DNA of 64,000 nt from Lepidodermella squamata. Its lineage: Eukaryota > Animalia > Gastrotricha. This document shows, in pieces, positions 1-18,454 of the stretch (position 1 is its first letter; every line of letters begins with the position of its first letter). The notes beneath the pieces are model-generated. The model searched no databases. It was not told the DNA's origin and worked only from the letters and a program-made list of their open reading frames with translations. The DNA lies in NCBI GenBank assembly GCA_047495785.1, contig JBLDXI010000009.1, forward strand, positions 2,294,001-2,358,000. The letters are read 5' to 3'. The translations under genes and the position numbers were made by a program.

Positions 1-1844
1 TGCCACCATTGGTGGGCTCGGTGATGTTTGCAACATGTGGAGCGATGCGCCGCAAACAACATGCGGGTCAGGGCTTACCTGCTGTAAGAACTTGAATTAT
101 ATAATTGCCTCGCTAAGATTTTTTTCATCGATTAGTCAAATGTCCCGAATCATACAAGAGTTCAGTCGTCCAGGCTAAATGTGTTTGTAAGTGCTTTATG
201 AATTAACAAAAGATGTTTCATTCACGAATAAATTTTCAGCCTACGATTTGCCATCGAATAACTGCCCAAGTGGGACTCGAACTTGTGGTTTCAACGCGGC
301 TTGTAAAGTTATTGGGGGAGTTCCTGTTTGCATGTGCACAAAAGCTGGCCATATTCTCGACAGCAACTTGGTATTTTTACCTTGTCACACGGAGTTTCAT
401 TACTCTATTATGCCTTATCGACAGATTGATTGCTACGGATGGACAGAAACTAAAGGCTCGTGCAATGCGACATGTGGAGCTGGTTTTTATGAAGTCACCC
501 GAACTTGCGAAAAGGCGAGTGGATCAAAAGCTGTGTGTCCGGGGCCTTCATCCTTTACCGTCGCCTGTTCAACCGGTGTTGAATGCCCACGTAATCTAAC
601 TTTTTATCGCATAACTGTGGGCTTTATTATTCATCAAAAACAGTGCCGAAGGAGCAGCTTTCTAAATCTGTTTTCCTGGAGGTCGTCACGAAAGTCATCA
701 CAGTTGATCTATTTGATAAATATTTGGAATCACCAGTGAGACGCGTAATCGCATCTGGCTTGACGACGAACTGCGTCAAAAACTCAACCGCGTTTGAAAA
801 TCAATGCTGCCCTGGAAAAGTGTGGGCTGCGGGTATCACAGATACTGACTGCATAGGCGTCTCCAATGTTCAGCTGATAAACAAGTTCTACGATGGTGGC
901 AGACTCAAATTCTACATTAGCGCGCAAAACAGCGGAACCAGCAAATGCTGCTCGAACGCTGCGGCGAAAATGTCACGCCGAAAACGAGCGACGTCAGTCG
1001 ATATCGACCAGTCTACTCTCGCCTCTGTTGTTTCGAGTCAATCAGTGTAAGTATCGATCAAATTGTTTGAACTCAATTTCATGACATCATTTTCCCCAGC
1101 GTTAATGATATCACCGGTGAAGTACAAAAAGTGGACCCCGATGGCAAGGTTCCTGGAAGCTCTATCATTATAGCCTCCGCGGTCACAACTGCCTCTCCGT
1201 CCACTGCTGCAGCGGCTGGGGCTAACTCAGGGGCTAATTCGGGATCTGGGGCTTCGACTACTAATGCTGCGTCAGCCGTCACAGCTCAGGCTGTTGGTAG
1301 TAGTGGTTCCTCATCGGTAACCGTTTCCCCCATTTTTTGCATCTTGTATTTACACATCTTCAATTTCAGTCCTCAAGTGGCGGATTGGAAGGGTGGGTTA
1401 TTGGTGTTATTGGTGGAGTAATTGGTCTTGTCGTGGTTGGGGCTGTAGTCGGAGTGATCGTTTTCTGCATCATCAAGAAAAAGTAACCAGGCTTTAATAC
1501 AGCCTTTTTGGCCATTATTACATTTTTCTCTCAGGAATTCTGGTAAGGTGGCAAATGCATCAGATCCACCAACCCCTTATGACCATATCCAAGAAAGTAC
1601 TGAGAATCACAAAATAGCGTCAGCCCGACCTACTACAGTCGTGCGACCGGGAACAGTTGTCCAGCCTGAATCTGGTCTCAGGCCAAGCACCCGAGCTTTT
1701 CCTCGATCTGCTAGGCCGGATGATCATATTGCACCTGGCGGCGAACCACCAAATCCAAACGACCCGAATTATCCTGCCTACTTCGGCAGATATCCGTCTG
1801 CCAAGCCTGAAGCTTTGGCACCACAGTCAGTGCATGGACATTGA
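1..1844 (+). CDS. Array gene A (5'-truncated by window edge): Cys module + EGF-like + TSP1 + SEA-like domain (RRKR) + S/A/T linker + Gly-rich TM + Tyr-motif tail
   Basis: Hand-spliced exons ~1-83, 136-186, 240-370, 425-590, 644-1046, 1100-1316, 1370-1481, 1535-1844 with GT..AG introns. EGF-like CGFNAACKVIGGVPVCMC, TSP1-like GW..CNATCGAG..R.C..C..C..C, TM GWVIGVIGGVIGLVVVGAVVGVIVFCII-KKK, tail ..PNYPAYFGRYP..LAPQSVHGH. Paralogous to genes B, C and D. Confidence 0.85.
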
Positions 1845-2184
1845 CACTAGATCAAGTTCAGTTCATATTGCGAGAATTCTTAATTCTATTCTTTCCTATC
1901 TTTCATAATCAGCTGATGCCGCTTTTCTATTAATTCATTCTTTTGTTGATCTCTATATTCAGCGTTATGAAGTAAAACAAAAAACGTTGCTTCGATCGAT
2001 TGCTGAGTTTTTTCTCATCGATATGGGTCACACCTTCACCTAGAACGGTTTGGCGCGTTGCTTCGCGTCAGCGATAAGGCTGGTAAACAGTGGTGCCGCA
2101 GCTTGCATAATGAAGTTTTGCAGTTCTCTCTAAAATCTAGGGGACATTTAATCGAGTCATTTTCTATCTCATGGAATTTTCGAG

Positions 2185-5100
2185 ATGAAAGTAACGTTGA
2201 AGATACTTTTCCTGCTTTTTAATTCGTTAGCTGTCATCGGTAAGCAGACTAAAGTCTGATAAACCCTATCACCAGAGATCACATTTTTTTAAACAGGTCA
2301 AGAGACAACAACTGTAGACTCCTCGGCGTTGATAGTTTGCCAGTACAATGACTGCACGGGGAAAGTCTTTCTCTCCTTCTCAGGCGGATATTTTCTTCAG
2401 CATTGCATGACCGCTGACGATACCATTCAGACTTGCGATACATCGACTGCAACCTTCGTTCCGCTGACAGATGCCAGCTTACCGAGCATAGCCTGCAAAG
2501 GAGATTACAAGTTCACCGTTCTCAGCACGGATTACTGGCTCGATGTCTATGACTTCAAGCGCTTTGATGGCACTGTCTGGGCAACTGTTGACTTGGGAGA
2601 GGCTTTCCACAACTATTTGTCGCGGCTGCGCGAGAATGAAGGTAAAATTATTTGATCAATTCACATCAAACTCAAAAATATTGCCTGATGTCAAGGAACT
2701 GGCTCATTTTACTGCAGCGCTCTAGTCAGCTCTACGCCTATAACCAGTACGACTGAGCTGAGTTACGAGAATGAAGTAGCTTGGTTCTACAATGGAAGTT
2801 ACTATGACATCGGGACTGACTCCACTGGTAACTTGGTCCAGCAGCCACAAGCTGTTGTGCAGCGTTTCTTGTACACCTACCCATACATCTCGCGAGACAT
2901 TGACCCCGCATGCGAATCCTCGGTGTGCTGCTGGTTCCAGGATGATATGCAGATCCTCTACAACGGGGAGTATCAAAATGTGCCTGCGGACTTTGTCTAC
3001 AATGGGACTAAGTGGCTAGTATGGGATAACGACCAATATAACCTGTATACAGGGGTATTCAATTGGGGGTAATTTGTATTTTCGATTTATTTCGGCGTTC
3101 ACAATTGAATTTCACAATAGGATTCTCGAGTGTTCCAACCACCTCTCGAACCTGGAGGTCTCAGATTCTGACGGGACTAAATACAAATTTATCAACGCAA
3201 CTCTGTGGGTTTTGGATAGCTCAGGAGAGCCAATCACTCTGGCGGCTCATGACATCCCATATTGGAACCTCGTCGACAGTGATTCGAGCGCTACCGGTGG
3301 CTATTACTACACACCAGATGAAGCGTCACCTGTAACCATGTGGAAAAATCACAGGTTTGTTCAACAAGCAGAAATGTTTAGACATTAAAGTAAAACCTTT
3401 CTCCCCAGTGGGATTTACTCTGTTTCGATTATCGATGGAGATTACGATTTCAAAGTGACAGACCAAACTACGGTAGCAATGACAGATGGTACAACTATCG
3501 GTGGAGATGAGACCTCGGCAGCTACAACAGCGAATGCAGCCACCACTGAGCCTGATTCAACCAGTACCCAATCCACATCTGAGCCTGATTCAACCAGTAC
3601 CCAAGCCACTACTGAGCCTGATTCAACCAGTACCCAAGCCACTACTGAGCCTGATTCAACCAGTACCCAAGCCACCAACCAGCCTGATTCAACCAGCACC
3701 CAAGTTACTACGCAGACAACGACACAGCCCAGTTCAAACACTGTCGCAACAGCAGCGACGACTACGACTCAGAGCAGCGCCACCTCCACAGTAACAGCCA
3801 CCACAGCAGCCCCTACTGCAACCACCCAGCCTTCTGAAACATCATCGACGGCAACCCAGGCCCAGACGACTCAGCCTACTACAACATCAAGTAGCACAAC
3901 TACCACTACTACCCCCACAACTACGACCACCCCAACAACAACTTCTACGACTACTACGACCACATCAACAACAACCACGACCACGACTACAACTACAACT
4001 ACTACTACACCACTGACGCCCCCTCCTTGCGTTTATGATGAAATGGATTTGGACCAGCCGAAAGATGCCGTATGCGCTGCACAGGCTGATGCGAACAAAG
4101 TCACTGGGATAACACTGTGCGATCCAAAAGATACAGAAGACGTTTGTGGACAGTATTACTACTGTTGGACGGTTCCCGACATTTTTGAAATGACGTGCTC
4201 TATGGGCATATGCCTTCCTGGTAAGCCACAATTCTCAATGACGAAATGATACTATTCTTAGTTTTTTTCTGAAAGCTTATGCAACTTTTTGCCCTGGGTT
4301 TTCGAATTCTTCGACAACGACTCAAGCTTCATCACTAGCGCGCAAACGTTCGATATTCAATTTTTGATTCAGCAATTTTAGTAATAACCTTTTCCTTTTC
4401 AGCATACAATTCGGCTTGCTCCTCGGACACCGAATGCTACACAGGGCGTTGCGATGGTGGGAAATGCTTATGTTCCTCTTGCACAAAGCTCCTCGCGGAG
4501 ATTGCATTCGATAAAATTCGAGGGGTTCCTTACTACCGCGAAAGATGCATTCGTATGTTCTCGTCTGTTTTGATTACCAGGGAATTAATCATTTATTTAA
4601 CAGCATCAAATAGCACGATTAATGAAGTTGGCGACACCTGCGATATGTTGAGCGATTCTCCGGCCAGCGCTTGCCAAACAGGCGCTACTTGCAGTTAGTT
4701 GAATGGTTTCCGTTTTGAATTTTCAAGCTGGAATATTTTTCTTGCAGTGAAGTGCCCGGAAGCATGGAAAAGTTCTGTCTTACCAGCAAAGTGCACAGGT
4801 ATATTGTCCTTTACCATTTTTTGATGTATTATCAGTTGTGAATTTCAGCTCTGAAAATCACAACGGCGGCCTGTTCCACTAATTCTTGCGGCTATCAGGC
4901 AGGGTGCAAAATGGTTGATGGAATATCTTTATGCACATGTACCAAGTCAGAATATTCTCTGGAATCAAATAAGGTGAGTTGATGATGATGATGCTGATGA
5001 ACCTCCTTATCCTGTTGCTTCACTAGATTGACTGCTACGGCTGGAATATTGTCAATCAAACAGAATGCAACGCAACGTGTGGCACTGGGTATTATCAAAT

Positions 5101-6388
5101 TACTCGAGTTTGCGATAAGAAATCCGGATCTAGCGCTGAGTGTGATGGCGACACTGTCATCTATGTCCCCTGCTCCGCAAGTGTTGAATGCCCCGGTAAG
5201 TGTTCCTCGATCCAGCTTTGATCTCCATAAACGATTTCAATCTTAGTACCGGCTGAGAAAAAATCGTCCGTAGTTTTGGTTGAAATTGAATCCAGAGTTA
5301 TCACGATTGAAATATTCGAGGAGTACCTCGAAAGCACCATCAAGTCTCTGATGGCATCTGCTCTGTCGACTAAATGCACGAATGACAGTGCCATGTTTGA
5401 GGGGCAGTGTTGCCCTGGCAAAGCCTGGTCTGCGGCTGTAGCTAAATACTCGGACTGTGTCAGCCAAACCGACGGTATCGAAATAATCAACAAATACTCA
5501 ACCGGCGAGAAGTTCAGATTCTACTTCAGCGCAAAAGGCGATCCAGCAAGCCAATGCTGCTCAACGGCGAGCGCAAAAACTCGACGAAAGAGAGCTGCTG
5601 ACTTTGATCAAAGCTCTTTAGCCTATATTATGGCGTCTTCGGGCGTGTAAGTGTATCCTAATCCAGCGTGACTAGACTTCACCCTTTGTCTTTGTACAGG
5701 CTCAATTCGTTTCAAACGGCGGTCCAAACTGTCGACCCTGATAGCACGTTGTCAGTTCCAGCAGCGACTACGACTACCGCGGCAACCACAACCACGGCAG
5801 CTTTAGCAGCGGGCGCGGCCACAAGCTCTGCAAGTGGAGGATCAGCAACTTCTTCTGTTTCCGCAACAACTACAACTACTGGCGTAGTTTCCGTCGCCCC
5901 TCAACAATCAGGTGGTAGTTCATCATCTTCGGTAAGACTTGCAACCAAAATAATTTGTAGCCGTTCCTTACCTTAATTTTCCCAAGTCTTCGGATGGCAA
6001 TGGAGCTCTCATTGGTGGTGTCGTTGGAGGAGTTCTAGGTGCCGCAGCGATTGGTGGAATCATCGGCGGCGTCGTTTATTTCATGAAAAAGAAGTAAGTT
6101 TCAAGCTAAAAATTACCCTTGAGTCACAATTATTCCTTTTTTATCAGGAATTCACCCAAAATATCGGATAGCAATAGGCCACCTAATCAAATCGCCACAC
6201 AGCGTATTTCTGAGGATACGATGATTAGAGGCCCCGCTCATGTCCCCATGGACCAAGATTCTCCTCGATTTATTCATGCGAATGTTGTGACGACGAAAGG
6301 GCCCCACCCAGAGTATCCATCTTATTACGGCCGTTACACTCAAGTTGGACCCAACAAGTCATTGGCCCCGACGCAGCCCTACGGCTAA
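2185..6388 (+). CDS. Array gene B: type I membrane mucin-like protein (signal peptide, unrecognised aromatic/Cys N-terminal domain, Thr-rich mucin, Cys modules, EGF-like, TSP1, SEA-like with RRKR, TM, Tyr tail)
   Basis: ATG 2185 gives MKVTLKILFLLFNSLAVIG (signal-peptide-like). ORFs 2329-2655, 2833-3072, 3074-3388, 3455-4249, 5276-5650, 5668-5976 and 6119-6388 join through short introns. TM ALIGGVVGGVLGAAAIGGIIGGVVYFM-KKK; tail PEYPSYYGRY..LAPTQPYG. Confidence 0.85.
3545..3709 (+). repeat. 33-bp coding tandem repeat x5 encoding (TEPDSTSTQAT)n mucin
   Basis: Unit actgagcctgattcaaccagtacccaagccact repeated about five times with few substitutions, followed by ACN-codon poly-Thr to ~4010. Confidence 0.9.
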
Positions 6389-7742
6389 TGAGAGCCTTGA
6401 AGGCGATGTGATCTTTCCGATGTAAAGAGATGACAGATCATTCTGAATGATTTACCAATATATCTTGCGGCAATCTCTTCTGGCTATAGCTTTACTCAAG
6501 ATATTCGCCCGGTGTTATTTTTGTTGCACTTTCTGAGTGTAAAAAGACTAATATAAGCTGACTCTTTTCTGCAGTGACATTTTCGAATAAATAATTTTTG
6601 TTCGGCATGTTTTGATTTGGCATGTTTCGAAGTATTATATCTTGCATTCGCATGTTGAAAAATACGACCAGGTGTTATCGAGACGAATTTCGACCCTCAG
6701 ACCGTCTGATTATTCGCAATTCGCAGGGTATATTTTTAAGCTCATGTATTATGCATGCTGCTCTATTTATTGGAATTTCTACATCGCATTCGTGACTCGT
6801 GACCTATTATTGTGTATCGCCTCCAGAATAAAATGCGGTATTAATGCTCTATCGGTGTTTGGAAATTCGATCGAATTGTCATTAATGTTAAAAACAAGTG
6901 GTATTGCCTTATCATTCAATTATCGAAATCGAAACGATTTTCAGGCCATGGGAAGGAGGATACAATTGAGAGGACTCATTGCCGAAAGGCTAAGCTAATT
7001 ATAACACTCGAGTTTGTGACCCATTGGCGCATCCTACAGCTAAAGGATTAGTTATCAGTTAGTTGCTGAACGCTACATAGATTCAAGTCAAATACTTATT
7101 TATTATTTTTTACTTCGTTGAGCTTAATCATGCCAGGTTATCGTCTATATTCATTGCTCAGGTGGATACTAACACTTATACCTCTAACTAATCCTTCTCC
7201 ATTTGCTGGTGCTTATGATTAAGATAAAGATATGATGCAGATGAGGGTTTCGATTTTTCGATAATTCGCTGGGAGATACATATTACGTCAGCAGGAGTTA
7301 TTTGATGAACATCCAAGTCTGTTGCTAATCAAACGTGGACCCGGCAACCCGGTGCATGTTGGATAAAGTTGGCGGTGCACCCATGCAGATCGCAATCACC
7401 CACGTGTAACATCGCATTTCCTGGCTACTCTCGCCTCAGCTGCTCTTCAAACTGTGCATCGACAATATCGCACCTGCGAACAACGCAAACAAGCCGTAGA
7501 GGTCCCTTATCGATAGTTCTTTATCGATCGTATGATCTTTCCAGAACAATGAATCATAATTTGTTTGGTGGAGGTGAAATAATGATTAAATTTGATTCTG
7601 GCATATTATACCTCACCGAAAGCTTATTGCTCTGTGCGTAGCAATGAAACGACCCACCAAGGGAAAGATAAAATATTCTGAAAGCGAGCCATAAATTTGC
7701 TTTTATTGATTCTCACCAAAGACAATTTATTGCCGATATCTG

Positions 7743-8403
7743 ATGGCTTCTTCTCTAACAAGCACCAAATCATTCAACTCCACAACGTTGGTTAGGAAAA
7801 ACTCTTTATTTTAGCTTGAAATAACGCTGATTTTATATATTTTATTAGCCCTCATCGAATAATAATCAAAACAGCGATTCTCAAATCGGGGCGATCATTG
7901 GAGGAACGATCGGGGGAATTGTCTTTATAATTCTTGCTGTTGGGTTAATTACTTACGCGATTTCATGGAAATCGTAAGTCAAAGGTCTTATATATTAACT
8001 CATTAAGAAAATTAATCAAAATTGCAGTAAGAGGCGAAAGGTAGCTGCTGGACAAACTGCTAAAAAGATGTTTGCAATCAAAGCGTTGGTTGCGGCTTCC
8101 AGACCAACTCGTCCAACTGCAGCTCGAATCGGCACGAGACCAGCAACGAGACCCATCATAGATCTACCGCAACCTCACTTTGAGTCGTCAGAACAACACG
8201 GAAACCCAAACAAAATGAAAGCTGCAACTCGTGTAATCATGCTTGGAAGCTCAATAACCTCGCGACCGGGTCAAGGTGTTGCTAACTACCCTCCGTCATC
8301 CGAACACCTGTTTCACGGTGGGAGCCAGACTCACTTCAATCCGTATTCCCAACCTGCTTTCGTCGAGCCAGTTTATGCTTCAGCGCCACCTTATGGTAGA
8401 TAG
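7743..8403 (+). CDS. Array mini-gene E: ectodomain-less TM + tail paralog (or alternative 3' exon pair of gene B)
   Basis: Exons 7743-7790 (MASSLTSTKSFNSTTL), 7849-7973 (PSSNNNQNSDSQIGAIIGGTIGGIVFIILAVGLITYAISWKS) and 8028-8403 (KRRKVAAG..RPTRPT..NYPP..PPYGR) are in phase. TM exon has the same phase 0/phase 2 borders as in genes A-D. AATAAA at ~8559. Confidence 0.65.
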
Positions 8404-8894
8404 GCCTCTTTATTTTTGCATCCATCTAGCGTTCTAGAATCCACCTAGAAGGCTCATATGCGATGTTTCCATGTTTCCATGTTTCGTATTCCCGATGTCC
8501 ACAGCGACTTTTTATACTCTCTACTTATTGTTATACAGACGAATAGTAATTACTTATTAATAAAATCATTCTTTCAGATGGAAGATGGCGTTGTTTGAGC
8601 CATTCTTCCACTATTTTTCTTTCAAGCGATCTCAGCCAACGGCTGTAGTCGCCCTGGCAGCTCTGTAAAATCAGCCAGAAAAAACCACTTGTTTATGTAT
8701 CGGAATTCGTTGAACGCGGTATGCTTACTTACGCTGCCTAGCAAATCATCATCGACAATATGAATTATTCAGCGGCTACAAGAAGAGGATTTCACCCTCT
8801 TGAAGGGTGTAGCACTTTTACGGCAAACAATTTCTCGGTTGTGTAAAATAATTTATTCTTAGCAGTGAAATCTAGCACGAGATCAGCAAATGAC

Positions 8895-11800
8895 ATGACG
8901 AAGGTAAGCCTCTCAAAGTCAGCATGGTTCTTCTGTTAAAGGCCTTCGTATAGGGAACATACAGAATCCTAATATCATGCGCCTTACTGAGCGCAATGAT
9001 ATCTTTGATTTACGGTGGGTAATTACGCTAACAGCTTTGATACGGTAAAACTGAGTTTCAACTCATTCAGGTCAAAATAATGTTACAACATCAGCTAACG
9101 CGACGGCATCGGCTACTACTACGTTAGCCGCGACCACAGTCAAGTCGAATACTAGTAAAAATCTTCACAACATGGATATATTTCTTTTTAAATTGTAAAT
9201 CTCAGCAAATACCAATGCAACTTCAAGCTCGGCTTCAAACTCTACGTCCACGAGTTCGAATTCCACATCCTCAAATGCTGCAAGCTCGAACAGTTCTGCC
9301 ACTGCAGCTGCAGGTAATTACTGCGAATGATAATTTAATGATCTATCAGATTCTCCCTCTTTCTTAGCTAACGCTGGTGAGTTGACGGCTAGCGAGTATG
9401 ATTTTTATACCTTATTTTCTGTTGAAAGCAACGACTGCAGCTACAACTGCGGCTGCGGCTGCAACTACAGCTGCGGCTGCGACTACAGCTGCAGCTGCTG
9501 CTACAACAACAGTCGCAGCAACGACACAAGCCGCGACTACAACAACAGCAGCGACAACTACAACTACAGGTTGATGGGTCTCACGTTGATTGCTATACTT
9601 ACCGAAGATTATTTTACCAATAGCTTCATCGTCAGATGGCACCCCTGTGAAGCCAACAAAGGTATACTGCGGCAACACAACATACTGCAATGGGACAGGA
9701 TTCACTGACAGCTTGGGCACAATTTATTGCATTACCAGTGATCTTCAGATACAAGAATGTGATCCTGATACAGAAGATTTCGATCCGGTTGCTGCGGGCG
9801 CCTTGGCATACTTGCCATGTTTTGGAAATTTCACATTCACTGTTTTGAGCACCAAGTTTTGGCTGAAAGACATCTACCTGCTCAAACACAATGGGGTGAA
9901 ATACGTCTATACTACCTGGCCGTCTTTGGATTCAATGACCAGGTACTTGTCGCGATTGAGGCAAAATGAAGGCTCGGGGTGGTTCTATTGCGCCGCTTCG
10001 GTTTACACAAAGCTTAATAACGGCACATACACATCAACGAAAACCGTTGCTTTCTACTACAACGCAACGAACTATTACGATGTAAAAGTCAACGCTTCGG
10101 GTTACTTGACGTTGGCTACTCAGGAAACTAAACAATCAGCGCTGTACACTGTCCCATTCGTCACCAAGGACATCGACGGTTGTGCCTCGACAGTCTGTTG
10201 CTGGTTCCAAGATACTTACAATGTTTCTAGTACCGAGAAAGGCGTCACTGATTTCGTGTTTAATGGCACGAAGTGGACTTACTACGTTAGCAACGCCTAT
10301 ACCGTCTACACGGGTGATTTTAACTGGGGGTAAGGATGCATTCCGTTAACTTGGATTAGCTTAGATTTTGGATATAATTTTTTATTCAGGATTGCGAGCT
10401 GCGCTGCTTATTTGTCTAATTTCGCTTACAAAATGGCAAATGGTACCAAATACAAGTTTGAAAATGGATCTGTTTATCAGACAACCAGCAGTGGAGCCGT
10501 AACAGGGCCTGCTAGAGTTGATACTAAGCACGATGAACTGATCGACTCCGATCCTTTAGCCAGTGGAGGCTATTACTTCACTTTGCCATCAAGTACCTGG
10601 GGCATGTTCAGAAATCAGAGCGGCAATTACAGCAGCACTGTCAAGAACGGAGACTTCTCCTTGAGCAAAGTTCCTCCCAGTTGTACCGAGGGTGGTAAAA
10701 GGCTGTGGCAGAACGCGTCTCCAAGATGTACGGCGTCCACCGATGTGATCAGGTTGACGAGAAACATACCTTGTGATCTTCAAGAATCTCCTAGTATCTG
10801 TGGGACTGGTTACAAGTGCATACCTATACCCACGGTGTTTAGCATATCATGCAGCATGGGCTTTTGCATGCCTGGTAAGCTACGAAATTTCGCTAACCTC
10901 TGATAATCGGAACTATGTATAGATTATGAAAAATGCACGCCAACGACTACAACTTCTACTACAACTACTAGTACAACAACAAGCACCACCACCACTACCG
11001 CGCCTACGACCACAACAGCAGCTACGACAACAGGAGTAACAACAACTGCTGGCACGACGGCAGCCCCCACGACAACCCGTCCGACAATTACCGGCTTGCA
11101 AAGTGAGTTTTTGTATGGTTTCATGTTGCTGGCTCAACCAAAACCTGACTATCATAGAATATGGGTCATATTGCTACGTTAATTCTGACTGCTTCACCGG
11201 CCTTTGCGTCAACAACACCTGTTCTTGCTCTTCGTGCTCTCAAATTCTTGCTGGTTTCGACTACGATTACACGAAATCGTCGCTGTACTACGTCGAACGA
11301 TGCATCCGTAATGACTTTATCTTTACTTCGGGAATTCATTTTAAATTTTTCATAACAGCGAGTAACAGCACAATTGGTGGTCTGGGTGACACTTGCGATC
11401 TCTGGGCCGATATGAAATCAAAAGCCTGTGGCAATGGGCTTGTTTGTGGTATGTGCGTCATAAATTCTTGGTTATCGTGGTTCAAGTTTGTTGTTACTTA
11501 AGCTAAATGCCCGGAAGCGTGGAAGAGCTCAGTTACCCCAGCGAAATGCGTTTGTAAGTTCTTAACAAGGGTAATGTGCCTATCTTCGAAACCGATTTAC
11601 TATAGCTCTGAACATCTCTTCATCTTCATCATCGGAAACTTGTCCATCGACTTATTCCTGTGGATACAAGGCTACATGTAAAATGATTGGTGGAGTACCC
11701 GCATGCACTTGCACTTCTGCCGGATACGCACTTGAGTCGAACGGTGTTGATTGCTACGGCTGGAGCATTACCAGCCAAACCACTTGCGGAGTCACCTGTG

Positions 11801-13326
11801 GCAACGGAGCGATAACAATTAATCGAGTTTGCGACAAAAAGAACTCGTCCACCGCTGTTTGTTCGGGCAATACTACCCTTACCCAGTCTTGCAAAGCTGC
11901 ATCTGCCTGCCCTCGTAATATAGTAAACCTTCTTGAGATCCCTAATAATTATTTTTGATTAATCACAGTACCGGCCGAAGCTTTGCCTGCTTGTGTGCTC
12001 ATTGAAATCACCTCCAAAGTGATCACTGTCGACATTTTCGAAGGTTACATCGAGTCGCCCATCAAAACTCAAGTAGTTACAAGTCTTAACTCAAAGTGTA
12101 TCAACGACAGTTCAACCTTTGAGGGGCAGTGCTGTGTAGGGAAGGCTTACTCTTCTAGCATTACAGCCACAGACTGCATCAATCCTACAACTGGAGTCAC
12201 ATTTCTGAACAAATTCAGGTGAGATTAGTGGAGACAGTGTAGCGATTTCTAAGATGTATTTATCAGCACTGGAGAGAAGTTCCAGTTTTACATGATGGCT
12301 ACAGGCGACAAAACCAGTGATTGCTGTTCAAAAGCATCGGCCAAATCAAGTCGCAAAAAGCGAGCTGCATCAAGTGGAGCTTTTGATCAAAGCATTTTGG
12401 CTGCTATCGTCTCCGGAACTACTGTGTACGAAAGGAGTATTGCGATATTACTATAATTTTTGTGAAATATTTTTCATTAGGATGGACGCGATCAAAACAG
12501 CGGTGAAAAATGTAAGAGCCTGCCGAATCGAATTATTGTTATGATTATCGAGCAATTCTGTGATAGGTCGATCCTAGCGCTGTTATTCCAGCTGATGCTG
12601 TTTCTATTGCAACAACTACAACAACGACTACCACTGCGGCAACAACCTCGAGCAGTTCTGGTTCTGGATCCGCTGTGGCAGCGGCTGTTGCGGTAATTTA
12701 GAAACTGCCTCACTGAAGCATTTTAACTAATTGCGACTTCCTTTATTATAGACAGCTGCTCTGGCTGTGTGGGTGTACTACGCAATTGGAGGTGGCTTAG
12801 GCGGATTGGCGTTGATAATCATTGTTGTCGTGATTATTGTGGTGATGCAGAAAAAGTACGATTTCTCGCAAATTATATCTCCCACCTTAATTTGTGCCTT
12901 TTCAGGAAAAATGCAGCTACCAAAGTTGCAGCATTCCCACAGGACCCGAATGATCCCGGTGTTCGACCCATGGTCAATTTACAAGTACAGCAGGGTGGCC
13001 CAGCAATGGCTCATGGTCACCTAGAACCAGTCGCTGGCTACAACCAAAGCGCCGTTGGCTACCATCAACCCCAAAACGGAGGGTATGGTGAAAATGCTGC
13101 CTACGGGGGTCAAGATGCAGCCAATGCGTACCCTCAGCAAGGCACGTATGATCAAGCAGCTTTCGACTACGCCAGCTACTACGGTCAACAGGCTGCCTAT
13201 GACCCTAATGCTGCAGCTGCTTACGGGCATGCGGGTGCCGCCCCTGATTACCCACCATATTACGGCCATTATCCGCAAGCTGCGGATGTACAAGCGATTG
13301 CTCCTCAGCCAGCTCATGGCTATTGA
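8895..13326 (+). CDS. Array gene C: type I membrane mucin-like protein, same architecture as gene B
   Basis: Spliced start MTK|GTYRILISCALLSAMISLIYG|QNNVTT (signal peptide), several small S/T/A exons, ORFs 9590-10333, 10412-10903, 11103-11501, 11683-11958, 11983-12222, RKKR at 12352-12363, TM VWVYYAIGGGLGGLALIIIVVVIIVVM-QKK, tail 12906-13326 ..PDYPPYYGHYP..IAPQPAHGY. AATAAA at 13491. Confidence 0.85.
9430..9570 (+). repeat. Low-complexity coding repeat (Thr/Ala mucin tract of gene C)
   Basis: Repeating acgact/gcagct/gcggct codon pairs encoding TTAATTAAAAATTAAAATT. Confidence 0.75.
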
Positions 13327-13709
13327 AAGGAGTATCCATTATATCAAACCTAGTCCCATTTTATTATCCCGATTGGCTGAATAGCCCGTGATTATTAAGG
13401 CTGACTTGCATACACCATTGCAATATTTTGCGGTCCTTGACCTTTCTTTGCAGTAATATTTTTTTCTGTTTAAACTGTGCTGTGAATTACAATAAAATGT
13501 GATAACTCAAACTTGGTATAATCTTCTTATTTACGACTTCTTATGTATGGAAAAACCTGCTAACAAACAACTTATATTGGCGGTGTTTGTTTGAAACGTG
13601 TTTGTTTTGAGGTTTTCATTTCTGCTGTCACGTCGTCGCAAACAAGTAAACTCAGTGGCTGCAATGAATACTGCGAAATTATGATAAATTCCTATATATC
13701 TAATATACG

Positions 13710-16700
13710 ATGATCGTGTTCAAATTTCTGGCTTATCTCTCCTTTCATTCTGCATTTTGCCAAAGCCGAATCAAGTATTTTAAGAATTTCGAAATCCCGG
13801 CTACAACAATTTGGCCTTTGTTCGAAATAACCGAAGAATCAACAACCCCAACTACAACAAACTCGACAGAGGAATCGACCACTGTTAGGGAAATCAGCGA
13901 AATCCACCCAAGAGGTAGCGATGGGGCGAAATCCTTCTTCCTAGGGATGGATTTCAGCTTCCCACATTGCAAACCATCCGCCTGTCACGGCTTAGCGTTC
14001 GGTTACCAATACAAAAGCTGTTTACGATCGGATTACCAGCTTCAGGAATGCAAATTCGAGATAAGGACCAACACGACCTCGAAATGGTCCTACCAGCCGT
14101 TGACTTGCCTGAAAGCTGTATCAAGCGTGCCATGCCATGGCCATTTCAACTTCTCAATCCTATCGACAAGATATTGGCTCAACAGCACGATATTACTTGC
14201 ATGGAGTGGTTCAAACTGGAAGAATGTAGATATCTCACCCTACACGTATTACCTCGCCCGTTTGAGACCTAATGAAGGAAACGGGAGTTTGTATTGTACA
14301 GGGTTTCGATCACCCTCTAGCAGTTTGGTCTACAGCGCTTTTAGCTATTTTTACAATGGTAGTTACTACGAGTTATCTACCGATAACGGAGGCTATATGT
14401 ACAAGGCTAAAATTATCGATGATAGCGGGTATAGGAAGTTGGCCTTCTTCACGAGGAATGAAACTGGTTGCCAGAATCCGATGTGTGTCTGGTTTCAGGA
14501 TGAATACACGGCCACACTGCCGAATGGAACTGTCTCGGCTGAGTTGACAGAGTTCAGATATTCAAATAAATGGTTCGTATGGATTGCGGCGGAAAATAGT
14601 TACATCTTGTACACGGGTCCTGTAACAAAGAGGATGGCGCAGAGTTACGTGAAATACTTCTCCGACTACACATGGACTTTGACGAATGGAACGACTTACA
14701 GTTACATCAACGGAACTGTATTTCGGTTGGATGACGACGGCCAGCCGATTCGAAGTTGGTCTTCTATCGGGCTGTGGTGGTGGAATTACTGGGATTATAC
14801 AGCGTGCGACCCGCAAGCCACCGGTGGCTACTTCTTCACGTACCCAGGGTCAGATCGAACAGTTTATCGTAACAGCAGTGGAGAGTATGATTGCTCGATA
14901 AAAGATGGGGAATTTGAGTTTCTCAAGCAATACGAAACCGAGCATAAATGCAACGACTCGGCTGAATCAAGTGGCAACGGTCGGAAATTCTGGTCTTGCA
15001 ATGCAGCGGCCGACCAACCCGGTGATAATACCTTGTCTGGTAATTTAAATTAAATAAATTTCGATTATTTTTTATTTCGAATTTTTCTTCAGTATGCGAT
15101 CCTGAGGATGAATTCTCTTGCCCGCAAGGCTTTCGATGTGTCAAATTTCCGGAGGTGATTGAAAAAGTATGCAGCCTAGGCATCTGTATGTCCCATGATT
15201 CACCCAACTCCACTTACCAACCCTTGCTAAGTGAGTTTTTTCCACTCATTTATTTTTCATTTTTCAACCAACTTTCCTGCAAAATAAGAATACGGCGAGG
15301 TTTGTGAGCAGCATTCGGATTGCTTTACTGGGCTATGCCTTGATGGTAAGTGCTCATGTTCGAGGTGTACGAAAATTCTGTCTGCAATCGATTACAACTG
15401 GATGACGTCAAGCTATGAATACAAAGAAGCGTGCATACGTATGTTTTTCCGAATTGCTAACGCGTAGGTATATTAATTGAATTTTTTATGAACGTCGCAG
15501 CTATTAAAAGCGCGATCGGCGGGCTGGGTGATTCATGCAGCCTTTGGCCGATAGCTAAAGACAAGGCCTGCGGGCATGGTATGGTATGTTCTAAGTGCCC
15601 GGAGCATTTCGATATACCGATGATTGACGCAACATGCAGTGGTAACAAAAAATAACTTGAAATTGATGAAAAAAACGAGGCAAATTTTTTATAGCTTTGA
15701 AACTAGTCGACTGGAGCAGGTGTGAAGATGGCCACAGGTGTGGTTACAATGCTAAATGCGCTGTTATCGGTAATGTCTCTACCTGCATCTGCCCAGATGG
15801 TTACAATTTGGAGTCGAACATGGTTGATTGCTACGGTTGGAGGCCGTGGAGCGAGACGCCCTGCAGTGCAACTTGCGGCAATGGCGTCGTTCAATTAAGC
15901 AGGATTTGCGACAAATTGCCCCATTCATCAGCTGCTTGCGATGGGAATGCAACAGTGCTTGCACCATGTTCCGCAGCAGTTCCTTGTTCTTGTGAGTAAC
16001 CGCGAAAATTTCCGCATAATTTCCCATATATAGTCATTTTTAGTGCCACCCTCCTTAAAAAAATCAGCAGCTCATGTGAGAGTTCAGACAAAATCATTGA
16101 AAATGAGCCAGTTTGACGCGATTCTGCAACCTCAGCTGAAAAATTCTCTGGCAGAATTTCTCACTGATATGTGCCTTCAAGATAGTGATATTTTCGAAAA
16201 TCAGTGCTGCCCTGGGCGAGCTTGGATTTTCCCGCATGAAGCTTACGATTGCGTCAGCAACACTACGGGAATAATATTTGTCAACAAATTCAGCGACCCT
16301 GATCAGTCATCTTTCAGCTTTTACGTAACGGCGCAAGTCGATCAGAACAGTATATGCTGTAAAGGGGCTCCAGTGATAAGCGAAGATTCGAGCAATAGGA
16401 AGCCGAAGAAGACTGTAAAGATAGCTTCAAGCTTCGATGCAGAGATTCTGAGCGAACTTCTCGCAACTTCGAAGCAAATGTGAGATTTACCTTGTTATAA
16501 GGCTTTATATCAATTTAATGTGCTTTCAGGATGTCGACTTTAACTACGATTTTCAAAAAAATTGATCCAAAGTCAAAAATATTAATCATGTCAAAAAGCG
16601 TCGAGTCAAACCGCGATCAAGTAATTAAAAATTCCTCCTTAATTTTTTAAATTTTCGAATTTTTTACAGAAATTTTCGCACAGCGCGAACGATTTTTTTC

Positions 16701-17061: not shown

Positions 17062-17376
17062 AGGACAGTTAATTCTGTTTACGCGTATTTCAATAAATTG
17101 ATAAAATGTTGACTATAGACCCTTGGATTGTGTGGGTGAAACCTGAAATGGGTCAAGCATATAATGAACCTCGTGATGTTACTCCTTGGAAACTGCAAAG
17201 TTGTAGGAGGTTCAGCCGCCACCTCGTGTCGTCGTTAAAATTCTGGCTAAAAGCCTCTAATGCACTCAGCTTTGTGTTTTTCATTTTTTTGGTCGCCCGT
17301 TTGTTTTTTTTGGCGGTTGCATAGAGGTCATATCCACTGGGATTGCGCTACTAAAGTTGAAATTCCTCAAAATAAA

Positions 17377-18454
17377 ATGATCATGAAACACATCGCATCA
17401 ATATTACTGTTTTTTTCGATGAAAGCCTTGGCAACGGGTAAGAATATTTTGATTCAATAACTTGGCGTAATCCTAATCAACCACAGACCCAGAGATGTAT
17501 GCATCGAATGATCCGGATGGCTCAACGTAAATTCTTTTCCAGGTTTTTTGTGAATAAACCTCAATTTTTTTTATTTCACCAGCGCCGGGAATGTAAATGA
17601 GGAGAAAACCACAGTAAGCTAATCTACCATTTTTTATTTCCTGGTTATGATTTTTCCGCAATCTAAAAGCGATACATCCTTTCGAGAACAATGCCACCTG
17701 AGTAGGTCTCGAATTTGAAAAGTGGGTTCTTAGTTAAATTTGTTTTTGTTTCAAGAATCGCGAAGTTGAAAGCTGCTATGGAGAGTGGAGACGAGGACGA
17801 GGTTGCAAGGTTCCTATTTGGCCAAGAGATCACCACGGTATAGGACCGTGTAAAATGTTGAAGCATTATTTAAAAAAATATTTTTATTAGAAAAAAGACG
17901 TGAGTGATGGATCCCTGCCATCCTGGGCTATCGGGCTTATGAGTGCTTGTATCATCATATTTTGCGCGGTTTTGCTCATCGCCACGGGAATAGTCGTCGT
18001 CAAAAAGAAGTTCGCCTAATTTATCAGTTTAATTTATAAAAAGTCTATACCCTTTCCTCATCTATCAGCAATCATCCCGCTAAATTCCGTTTTATATCCC
18101 AGGTTGAAGATGAAAAGGTCGAAAGTTTCCTTTGTACCGCCTCCGATGGGCAACCTGCCAACTCATGATCAACTGATGAAATTTCAATACCAGCGAGCTG
18201 CAACAAGTCGAGATGGCAATAAGGCTTTAATCGCCGTTCAGGCTAAGGAATCAGCCCTGCCAAAATCAGCCCTGCCTTTGGCCGATAATCGATCTCAGCC
18301 GATTTTTGTCACTCAAACCGGGCACAGTGCTTTATCGGCTAGCTGGACAGCAACTGAAGCTGGGGTTCAGCGCGAAAAATCAAAAGCTGAACAGTTGATA
18401 CTTCCTCTAAGTGCAGACCCTTCGTTATCGCTGCGCAACTTGCACTTCAGCTAA
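17377..18454 (+). CDS. Array mini-gene F: small type I membrane protein with short ectodomain
   Basis: MIMKHIASILLFFSMKALATG signal peptide, several micro-exons (boundaries uncertain), TM exon 17891-18009 KKDVSDGSLPSWAIGLMSACIIIFCAVLLIATGIVVV-KKK with the same phase 0/2 borders as the other array genes, tail ORF 18104-18454. AATAAA at ~18492. Confidence 0.65.

Follow-up and report, generated by a model that had tools for sequence, protein, structure and literature searches.

Membrane-adjacent ferredoxin-like domains have been proposed as general proteolytic or mechanical switches, and SEA-like domains nicked by furin are at the core of Notch maturation. In Notch, the furin site (S1) lies in a poorly conserved loop that joins strands 3 and 4 of the HD domain; the fold stays intact after cleavage, and the product is a non-covalent heterodimer (PMC2726630). 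A furin site has also been reported for KIAA1549, within the SEA-like domain that lies closest to its membrane (PMC13570299). Membrane-proximal SEA-like domains with a convertase site in a loop are thus a known arrangement. The Notch HD, PCDH15 MAD12, dystroglycan, IA-2 and mucin SEA domains have been assigned to one class of SEA or SEA-like membrane-proximal domains in the paper on the SNAPS assay (PMC6586460). MAD12 and Nup54 share kinked helices and a beta3* hairpin, and low mechanical strength has been reported for domains of the MAD12 type (10.1101/460097). Here, we compare these systems with a domain that is encoded four times in a 64,000-nucleotide stretch of the genome of the gastrotrich Lepidodermella squamata (assembly GCA_047495785.1, contig JBLDXI010000009.1, positions 2,294,001 to 2,358,000 of the forward strand). 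The whole stretch is referred to as the window, and all coordinates are positions within it. Four paralogous genes, A–D, each encode this six-cysteine domain, and in genes A, B and C the domain contains a furin-type motif in a loop that, in the predicted structure, is equivalent to the S1 loop of Notch. What is new is the family itself, an orphan by sequence that appears to combine a MAD12-type fold with three probable disulfides and a position beside a TSP1 module.

A furin-type motif at a fixed position

The domain is ~150 residues long and is common to all four paralogs, in each of which it follows EGF-like and TSP1 modules and precedes a stalk. A tblastn search with the gene A domain exon as the query finds exactly four copies in the window, all on the + strand: 646-1047 (gene A), 5249-5647 (gene B), 11971-12426 (gene C, which has an extra intron) and 16076-16453 (gene D). 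A first-pass annotation of the window had reported a basic motif at the same position after a CC pair in three of these copies. Translation places the motifs exactly there: SRRKR|AT in gene A (976-987), TRRKR|AA in gene B (5582-5593) and SRKKR|AA in gene C (12352-12363), with the bar marking the predicted cut. In a MAFFT alignment of the spliced models, the three motifs form one column block, 8-10 residues past the second CC pair. The alignment also bears out the earlier observation that conservation picks up behind the motif, with D-Q-S-x-L-A and then, in the next exon, [VI]-D-P. The proposed start of the region, 644, is a true exon start.

What is the evidence that the motif is a convertase site? 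First, it is an exact furin-type consensus with a small P1' residue (Ala, Ser or Thr). Each motif-bearing domain has exactly one R-x-[KR]-R, always in the same place, against a background of roughly one occurrence per 1000 codons, whichever frame of the window is read. Second, the motif is written with different codons: CGC CGA AAA CGA in gene A, CGA CGA AAG AGA in gene B and CGC AAA AAG CGA in gene C. Because the arginine codons differ between paralogs, the motif is maintained at the protein level. Third, the motif is found in relatives from outside the window. When 1.84 billion (1.84e9) representative proteins were searched with a profile built from the four window domains, only seven matched (E 5e-40 to 6e-12), all of them unnamed, unannotated open reading frame (ORF) fragments from ENA metagenome assemblies. 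Their contigs also bear tandem arrays of the same gene type, and their source is evidently a related animal with fewer introns. All six relatives that include the loop have the motif (RAKR, RKRR, RRKR, RRKR, RMKR and RKKR). The length, flanks and sequence of the loop vary around a constant R-x-K/R-R, so the motif is a conserved feature of an otherwise free loop. A word-index protein search with the gene A domain exon gave no match within its length range. Judged by sequence, the family has no named relatives in the databases searched, where it is restricted to this animal and its close relative.

The conserved basic residues could instead form a surface patch, for example for a glycosaminoglycan or another acidic ligand, or could be the site of a non-furin protease. 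Cleavage of A–C is itself a prediction, and gene D retains a basic cluster, RKPKK, that lacks the furin consensus, as would be expected if charge were what mattered. However, the spacing of P4-Arg, P2-Lys-or-Arg and P1-Arg is kept in 9/9 loop-bearing members other than D, within a variable, disordered loop, and exact spacing combined with small P1' residues is typical of convertase sites rather than of charge patches. One paralog of the related animal also deletes the whole loop. We consider both the patch and the non-furin protease very improbable, and a furin-type site the better description of the motif.

The position of the cysteines bears on what a cut would produce. Their order, C, CC, C, CC, is conserved in all four genes; every one of them lies before the motif, and there are zero extracellular cysteines on its C-terminal side. 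Since all six precede the cut, the two chains would be joined only non-covalently.

Predicted fold and comparison with known domains

Structures were predicted with AlphaFold2 for an intron-less relative (P0002, residues 155-322, from a 15-row alignment) and for the gene A exon alone (134 residues, ending inside alpha2). The P0002 model has a mean predicted local distance difference test score (pLDDT) of 90.3 and a predicted template modelling score (pTM) of 0.86. Its elements are beta1 (12-17), alpha1 (23-48/50-57), beta2 (79-86), beta3 (90-98), alpha2 (128-135/138-149) and beta4 (around 156-162), with a short turn helix at the CC pair. The gene A model (pLDDT 86.5, pTM 0.80) has the same elements. 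The strand-helix-strand-strand-helix-strand order that the first-pass annotation anticipated is therefore seen in the models. The loop at 108-127 of P0002, which includes R116-K-R-R119, is the lowest-confidence block inside the domain, and the gene A motif (residues 111-114) lies in the weakest block of its model (111-120, mean pLDDT 63). The motif is thus predicted to lie at the tip of a hairpin loop after beta3 and before alpha2, within a single domain as had been proposed, and in the same region as the S1 loop of Notch. The P0002 helices break at 48/50 and at 135/138, and the loop is flanked by bridge residues. A second surface loop, between alpha1 and beta2, tolerates large insertions: in the relatives P0005 and P0008 it carries a Thr-rich, mucin-like insert of ~30 residues (residues about 64-95).

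The P0002 model was compared exhaustively with 48,161 PDB representatives using VIA-align. The best match is PCDH15 MAD12 (Z 10.9, root-mean-square deviation 2.7 Å over 108 residues), followed by Nup54 (8.5-8.8), CDH23 MAD28 (7.9), CELSR1 (7.7) and IA-2 (6.8), with lower scores for the Gpr126 SEA domain (5.5), dystroglycan (5.0) and the MUC16 SEA domain (4.7-4.8). No more than 6 of the 48,161 chains score Z>=8, every one of them from PCDH15 or Nup54. A second-look structure search adds the ACE2 collectrin-like domain (residues 610-727, Z 8.2-8.9). The gene A model retrieves the same top group (Z 7.3-5.7), with unrelated rows at 4.4. The kinked alpha1 and alpha2 and the beta3* hairpin of the MAD12/Nup54 type are also seen in our models. 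Neighbours in a protein language model include the SEA and KIAA1549 clusters (0.78-0.80; KIAA1549 0.78), values that lie below the trust level and were used as a lead only. On the strength of the models, it is very probable that the domain has a ferredoxin-like fold of the SEA-like/MAD structural class, with the MAD12/Nup54 subtype as its nearest neighbour.

By the sequence definition, the domain falls outside SEA. Pfam-A hmmscan, with E up to 1, matches SEA (PF01390) in none of A, B and D and in none of the 15 members of the alignment; profile searching of PDB sequences has no match for the domain either; and the SEA autoproteolysis motif, searched for as G[ST][VI][VI], is absent in all four domains. 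Classical SEA autoproteolysis was rejected because there is no GSVVV motif. Membership in the zona pellucida (ZP) module was rejected as well: Pfam scans give no zona pellucida match, and the fold is ferredoxin-like. The likeness to SEA and Notch HD domains that the first-pass annotation suggested therefore holds at the level of the SEA-like/MAD ferredoxin-like class, but the specific match is weak for Notch HD and modest for classical SEA.

How does the domain compare with individual systems? The MADs of PCDH15, CDH23 and CELSR are, together with Nup54, the best structural matches, and, like the domain described here, each of these MADs is the final folded extracellular module of its single-pass protein. 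However, sequence identity to this group is 8-11%, and we found no report of a furin motif in its domains. The cadherin MADs follow cadherin repeats and join the transmembrane helix directly, whereas here the domain probably has three disulfides, and its hairpin loop is enlarged. Notch HD is alike in having its furin consensus in a disordered and poorly conserved loop behind beta3, again within a membrane-proximal domain of ferredoxin-like fold, such that a cut would divide the fold into N- and C-terminal halves without a covalent link. A loop-less or uncut Notch HD still folds (PMC2726630), which may be compared with gene D and with the loop-less paralog of the related animal. The differences from Notch HD are that there is no sequence similarity; that LNR repeats cap Notch HD, whereas the upstream neighbour here is TSP1, with no LNR-like repeats; and that the present family has a long mucin-like stalk, six cysteines in the N-terminal half and no identified S2-type site. 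KIAA1549 is likewise a type I protein with heavy O-glycosylation, and its reported furin site is within the SEA-like domain closest to the membrane (PMC13570299). It differs in having three tandem SEA-like domains, an R-M-W-R motif and another ectodomain and tail, and no sequence homology to it was detected here. Classical SEA domains (MUC1, MUC16; PF01390) share the ferredoxin-like alpha/beta sandwich beside a mucin-type region in a membrane glycoprotein and the two-chain product held non-covalently, which is predicted here. They are cut autocatalytically, in the beta2-beta3 turn, whereas the motif here is that of an external protease and lies after beta3. Finally, the ACE2/collectrin-like neck and the IA-2/phogrin mature ectodomain (Z 6.3-6.8 for IA-2 and phogrin) belong to single-pass proteins that are unrelated to this family, and both are ferredoxin-like domains near the membrane.

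Paralogs without the motif

Gene D has NRKPKKT (16394-16414) at the motif column, without R-x-[KR]-R, in agreement with the RKPKK reported earlier. Since every one of its modules is in an open frame and the domain retains its six cysteines, it does not look like an obvious pseudogene. We regard it as an intact, divergent paralog that is probably uncleavable. The first-pass annotation had called it a cleavage-resistant version, which is apt as a description of its sequence and does not extend to a function. It had also described the site as lost. The residual basic cluster at the same loop position does suggest decay of a former site, and loss is plausible; however, no branch is supported in a maximum-likelihood tree of 11 domains, so loss and primary absence are not told apart.

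One explanation, to which we give even odds, is that general divergence of this paralog, by relaxation or neofunctionalisation, led to decay of the motif as of other features, and that gene D is not a purpose-built resistant variant. It is the longest branch of the window (end branch 2.98, compared with 0.13-0.79 for A–C), and it is only 28-33% identical to A–C. There is no S/T stalk, the tail carries a degenerate motif (HPTYFEQYRPKK), and the donor after its transmembrane exon (16786, GTTGGT) is weak next to those of A–C (GTAACC, GTAAGT and GTACGA). The open frames and the six cysteines argue the other way, as does a second, independent paralog without the site in the related animal, suggesting that uncut versions are tolerated or useful. 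This very divergent paralog (L004 2076-2543, also L005 2128-2544) keeps CCPGKTW and the fold elements, and its beta3-alpha2 loop is deleted, with no basic motif. Versions without the motif thus arose at least twice or are old.

Proposed cleavage and its products

Kexin/furin-type convertases are general in animals. A furin-type proprotein convertase would cut R-x-K/R-R in the late secretory pathway, and cleavage of A, B and C behind the motif is likely. The N-terminal product would comprise beta1-alpha1-beta2-beta3 and the whole ectodomain, with all six cysteines; the C-terminal product would comprise alpha2-beta4, the stalk, the transmembrane helix and the tail. Domain packing alone would keep the chains together, without a covalent bond, as a heterodimer like those of Notch S1 or mucin SEA domains, and separation of the two chains would free the ectodomain. 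Gene D and the loop-less paralog of the related animal would be single-chain versions. Whether the two chains of A–C persist as a heterodimer we judge to be evenly poised. Taken as a whole, the best explanation of the locus, favored by a small measure, is that genes A–D encode type I membrane glycoproteins in which a furin-type cut in the loop, where the motif is present, would yield a non-covalent two-chain domain.

Several points weigh against this explanation. Cleavage is a prediction from sequence and model, and association of the halves after the cut is purely inferred. The models were built on a shallow alignment (14-15 rows), and exposure of the loop is read solely from pLDDT and DSSP strings. 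The Foldseek comparison suggested by the first-pass annotation gave nothing significant: against PDB, there is no match at E<=0.001, the highest-probability rows being PCDH15 MAD12 and Nup54. An ESM Atlas structure search returned weak bacterial rows only. Since neither search gave anything significant, the fold assignment rests on VIA-align. Notch2 HD (NRR) matches the gene A model weakly (Z 3.2) and is outside the top 50 for the full P0002 model. Lastly, the long stalk separates the domain from the membrane, unlike in Notch HD or MAD12. The domain had been described as juxtamembrane; it is indeed the last globular, folded extracellular module and membrane-proximal, but a low-complexity, S/T/A-rich stalk of 45-75 residues in A–C (~30 in D) lies between it and the transmembrane helix.

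The same cut could also be a release step, in which the alpha2-beta4 piece leaves the fold and the ectodomain is secreted into a matrix or glycocalyx, with the membrane stub and tail as a by-product or a separate signal. Proteins of this kind would resemble ZP-module proteins, which have a consensus furin site and an external hydrophobic patch, but no ZP module appears in the Pfam scans. Release is suggested by the geometry of the cut, by which a small domain loses one helix and an edge strand while no disulfide spans the break, and by an ectodomain made of matrix-type modules. It is also consistent with the reported mechanical weakness of MAD12-type domains (10.1101/460097) and with the SNAPS assay, in which SEA-like domains without a stabilising neighbour shed constitutively (PMC6586460). 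On the other hand, conservation is strong through alpha2 and beta4 (D-Q-S-x-L-A ... V-D-P), as expected of a piece that remains in the folded domain, and the tail motif is conserved in A–C, which argues for a working membrane-bound receptor. Moreover, Notch keeps its fold after the furin cut, and mucin SEA domains remain associated after cleavage. On balance, release is unlikely, and the two-chain domain remains the preferred explanation.

Gene models and architecture

The tandem array lies on the + strand in a region with EGF, TSP1 and nuclear-receptor genes and introns of ~50 bp. The C-terminal parts of A–D were modelled as spliced on the basis of GT-AG junctions and comparison between paralogs. 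RNA-derived contigs were compared with 644-6600 (genes A and B); public runs X1 and X3 are spliced, and run X2 is unspliced DNA. The X1 and X3 contigs skip exactly the modelled introns (1047-1099, 1317-1369, 1483-1534, 5195-5246, 5932-5986 and 6094-6147), which shows that genes A and B are transcribed and that their modelled splicing is right.

The order of modules is a signal peptide, an N-terminal domain of ~400 residues, a mucin stretch, small Cys modules, EGF-like, TSP1, the six-cysteine domain, the stalk, the transmembrane helix and a Tyr-rich tail. The signal peptide was observed in gene D, and the transmembrane helix is followed by KKK in all four genes; from these two features the six-cysteine domain is placed outside the cell. 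The mucin stretch is Thr-rich in genes B and C. Copies of the N-terminal domain lie at 2329-3388, 9590-10903 and 13710-15053; the domain matches no Pfam family, and a word-index search of 5.8 billion proteins with the 447-residue N-terminal ORF of gene D found no homolog. The tail ends in P-x-Y-P-x-Y-[YF]-G-[RH]-Y, which is conserved in A–C.

In gene A, the EGF-like and TSP1 exons (240..590; Pfam TSP_1 E 0.0036, below the curated cut-off) lie directly upstream of the domain. The main domain exon (644..1046), whose end is supported by an RNA joint (1046->1100/1101), would encode beta1, alpha1, beta2, beta3, the site loop and the first half of alpha2, with the R-R-K-R motif at 976..987 and the predicted cut after 987, before Ala-Thr. 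In the spliced model and in the alignment to P0002, the second part (1100..1185) holds the rest of alpha2, V-D-P and beta4. It is followed by the stalk (1186..1316), the transmembrane exon with KKK (1370..1482; RNA joints 1316->1370 and 1482->1535) and the cytoplasmic tail with P-N-Y-P-A-Y-F-G-R-Y (1535..1844). In gene B, the main domain exon (5247..5646) begins at an RNA joint (5194/5195->5246/5247) and contains the R-R-K-R motif (5582..5593). The second domain exon part (5700..5770) comes from the spliced model, and the transmembrane exon (5987..6093) from the spliced model and RNA joints.

The domain of gene C is spread over four exons in the spliced model: exon 1 (11969..12218), exon 2 (12267..12425, with beta3, CC, the site loop and the start of alpha2; R-K-K-R at 12352..12363), exon 3 (12481..12511, alpha2) and the start of exon 4 (12567..12611, V-D-P and beta4). 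In gene D, EGF-like and TSP1 modules (15697..15996; Pfam TSP_1 E 9.4e-09, EGF_3 E 0.0015) again lie directly upstream of the domain. The main domain exon, with all six Cys retained, is at 16044..16479 and includes the degenerate basic cluster N-R-K-P-K-K at the homologous loop position (16394..16411); the second (16530..16620) holds alpha2, I-D-P, beta4 and a short linker, both exons being taken from the spliced model.

Three further observations concern the surroundings of the domain. First, the Thr-rich mucin repeat of gene B at 3612-3758 is replaced by 37 different letters in the X1 RNA contigs, which indicates repeat-length polymorphism of the mucin region between individuals or strains. 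Second, one RNA joint in gene B (4346-4403) has CG..AG ends and one extra letter between its sides; it is probably a normal GT-AG intron displaced by a variant. Third, directly after gene D, at 17100-18450 (+), lies a small, unrelated gene for a single-pass membrane protein, with a transmembrane helix, then KKK, and a long Ser/Pro-rich tail; it does not include the six-cysteine domain.

Functional implications

What are the functional implications of these proteins? The first-pass annotation had raised the possibility of a force-sensitive switch. Force sensitivity is speculation by analogy with MAD12, which is reported to be mechanically weak. In its fullest form, the idea would be that A–C are pre-nicked mechanoreceptors or adhesion receptors of a lineage-restricted family: a two-chain latch, made by furin from a mechanically weak MAD-type domain, would part under load and free the mucin/EGF/TSP1 ectodomain, the Tyr-rich tail of the stub would signal, and the paralogs without the site would be non-releasable. 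We regard this as a long shot. If it were true, Notch-S1-like logic would have had an origin in a domain of MAD type whose sequence shows no detectable relation to that of Notch.

For the present, the finding stands as a structural annotation that is well supported by the models rather than as a new mechanism. It adds an orphan family that joins a MAD12-like fold, as predicted, with a strictly conserved convertase motif in a loop equivalent to that of Notch S1, and it makes natural, probably uncut variants (gene D and the loop-less paralog) available for comparison. If the predicted cleavage is true, the family would be a further example of the nicked-domain design, with no detectable sequence link to the others, and would offer a compact (~150-residue), confidently modelled module for studying the cohesion of nicked ferredoxin-like domains.

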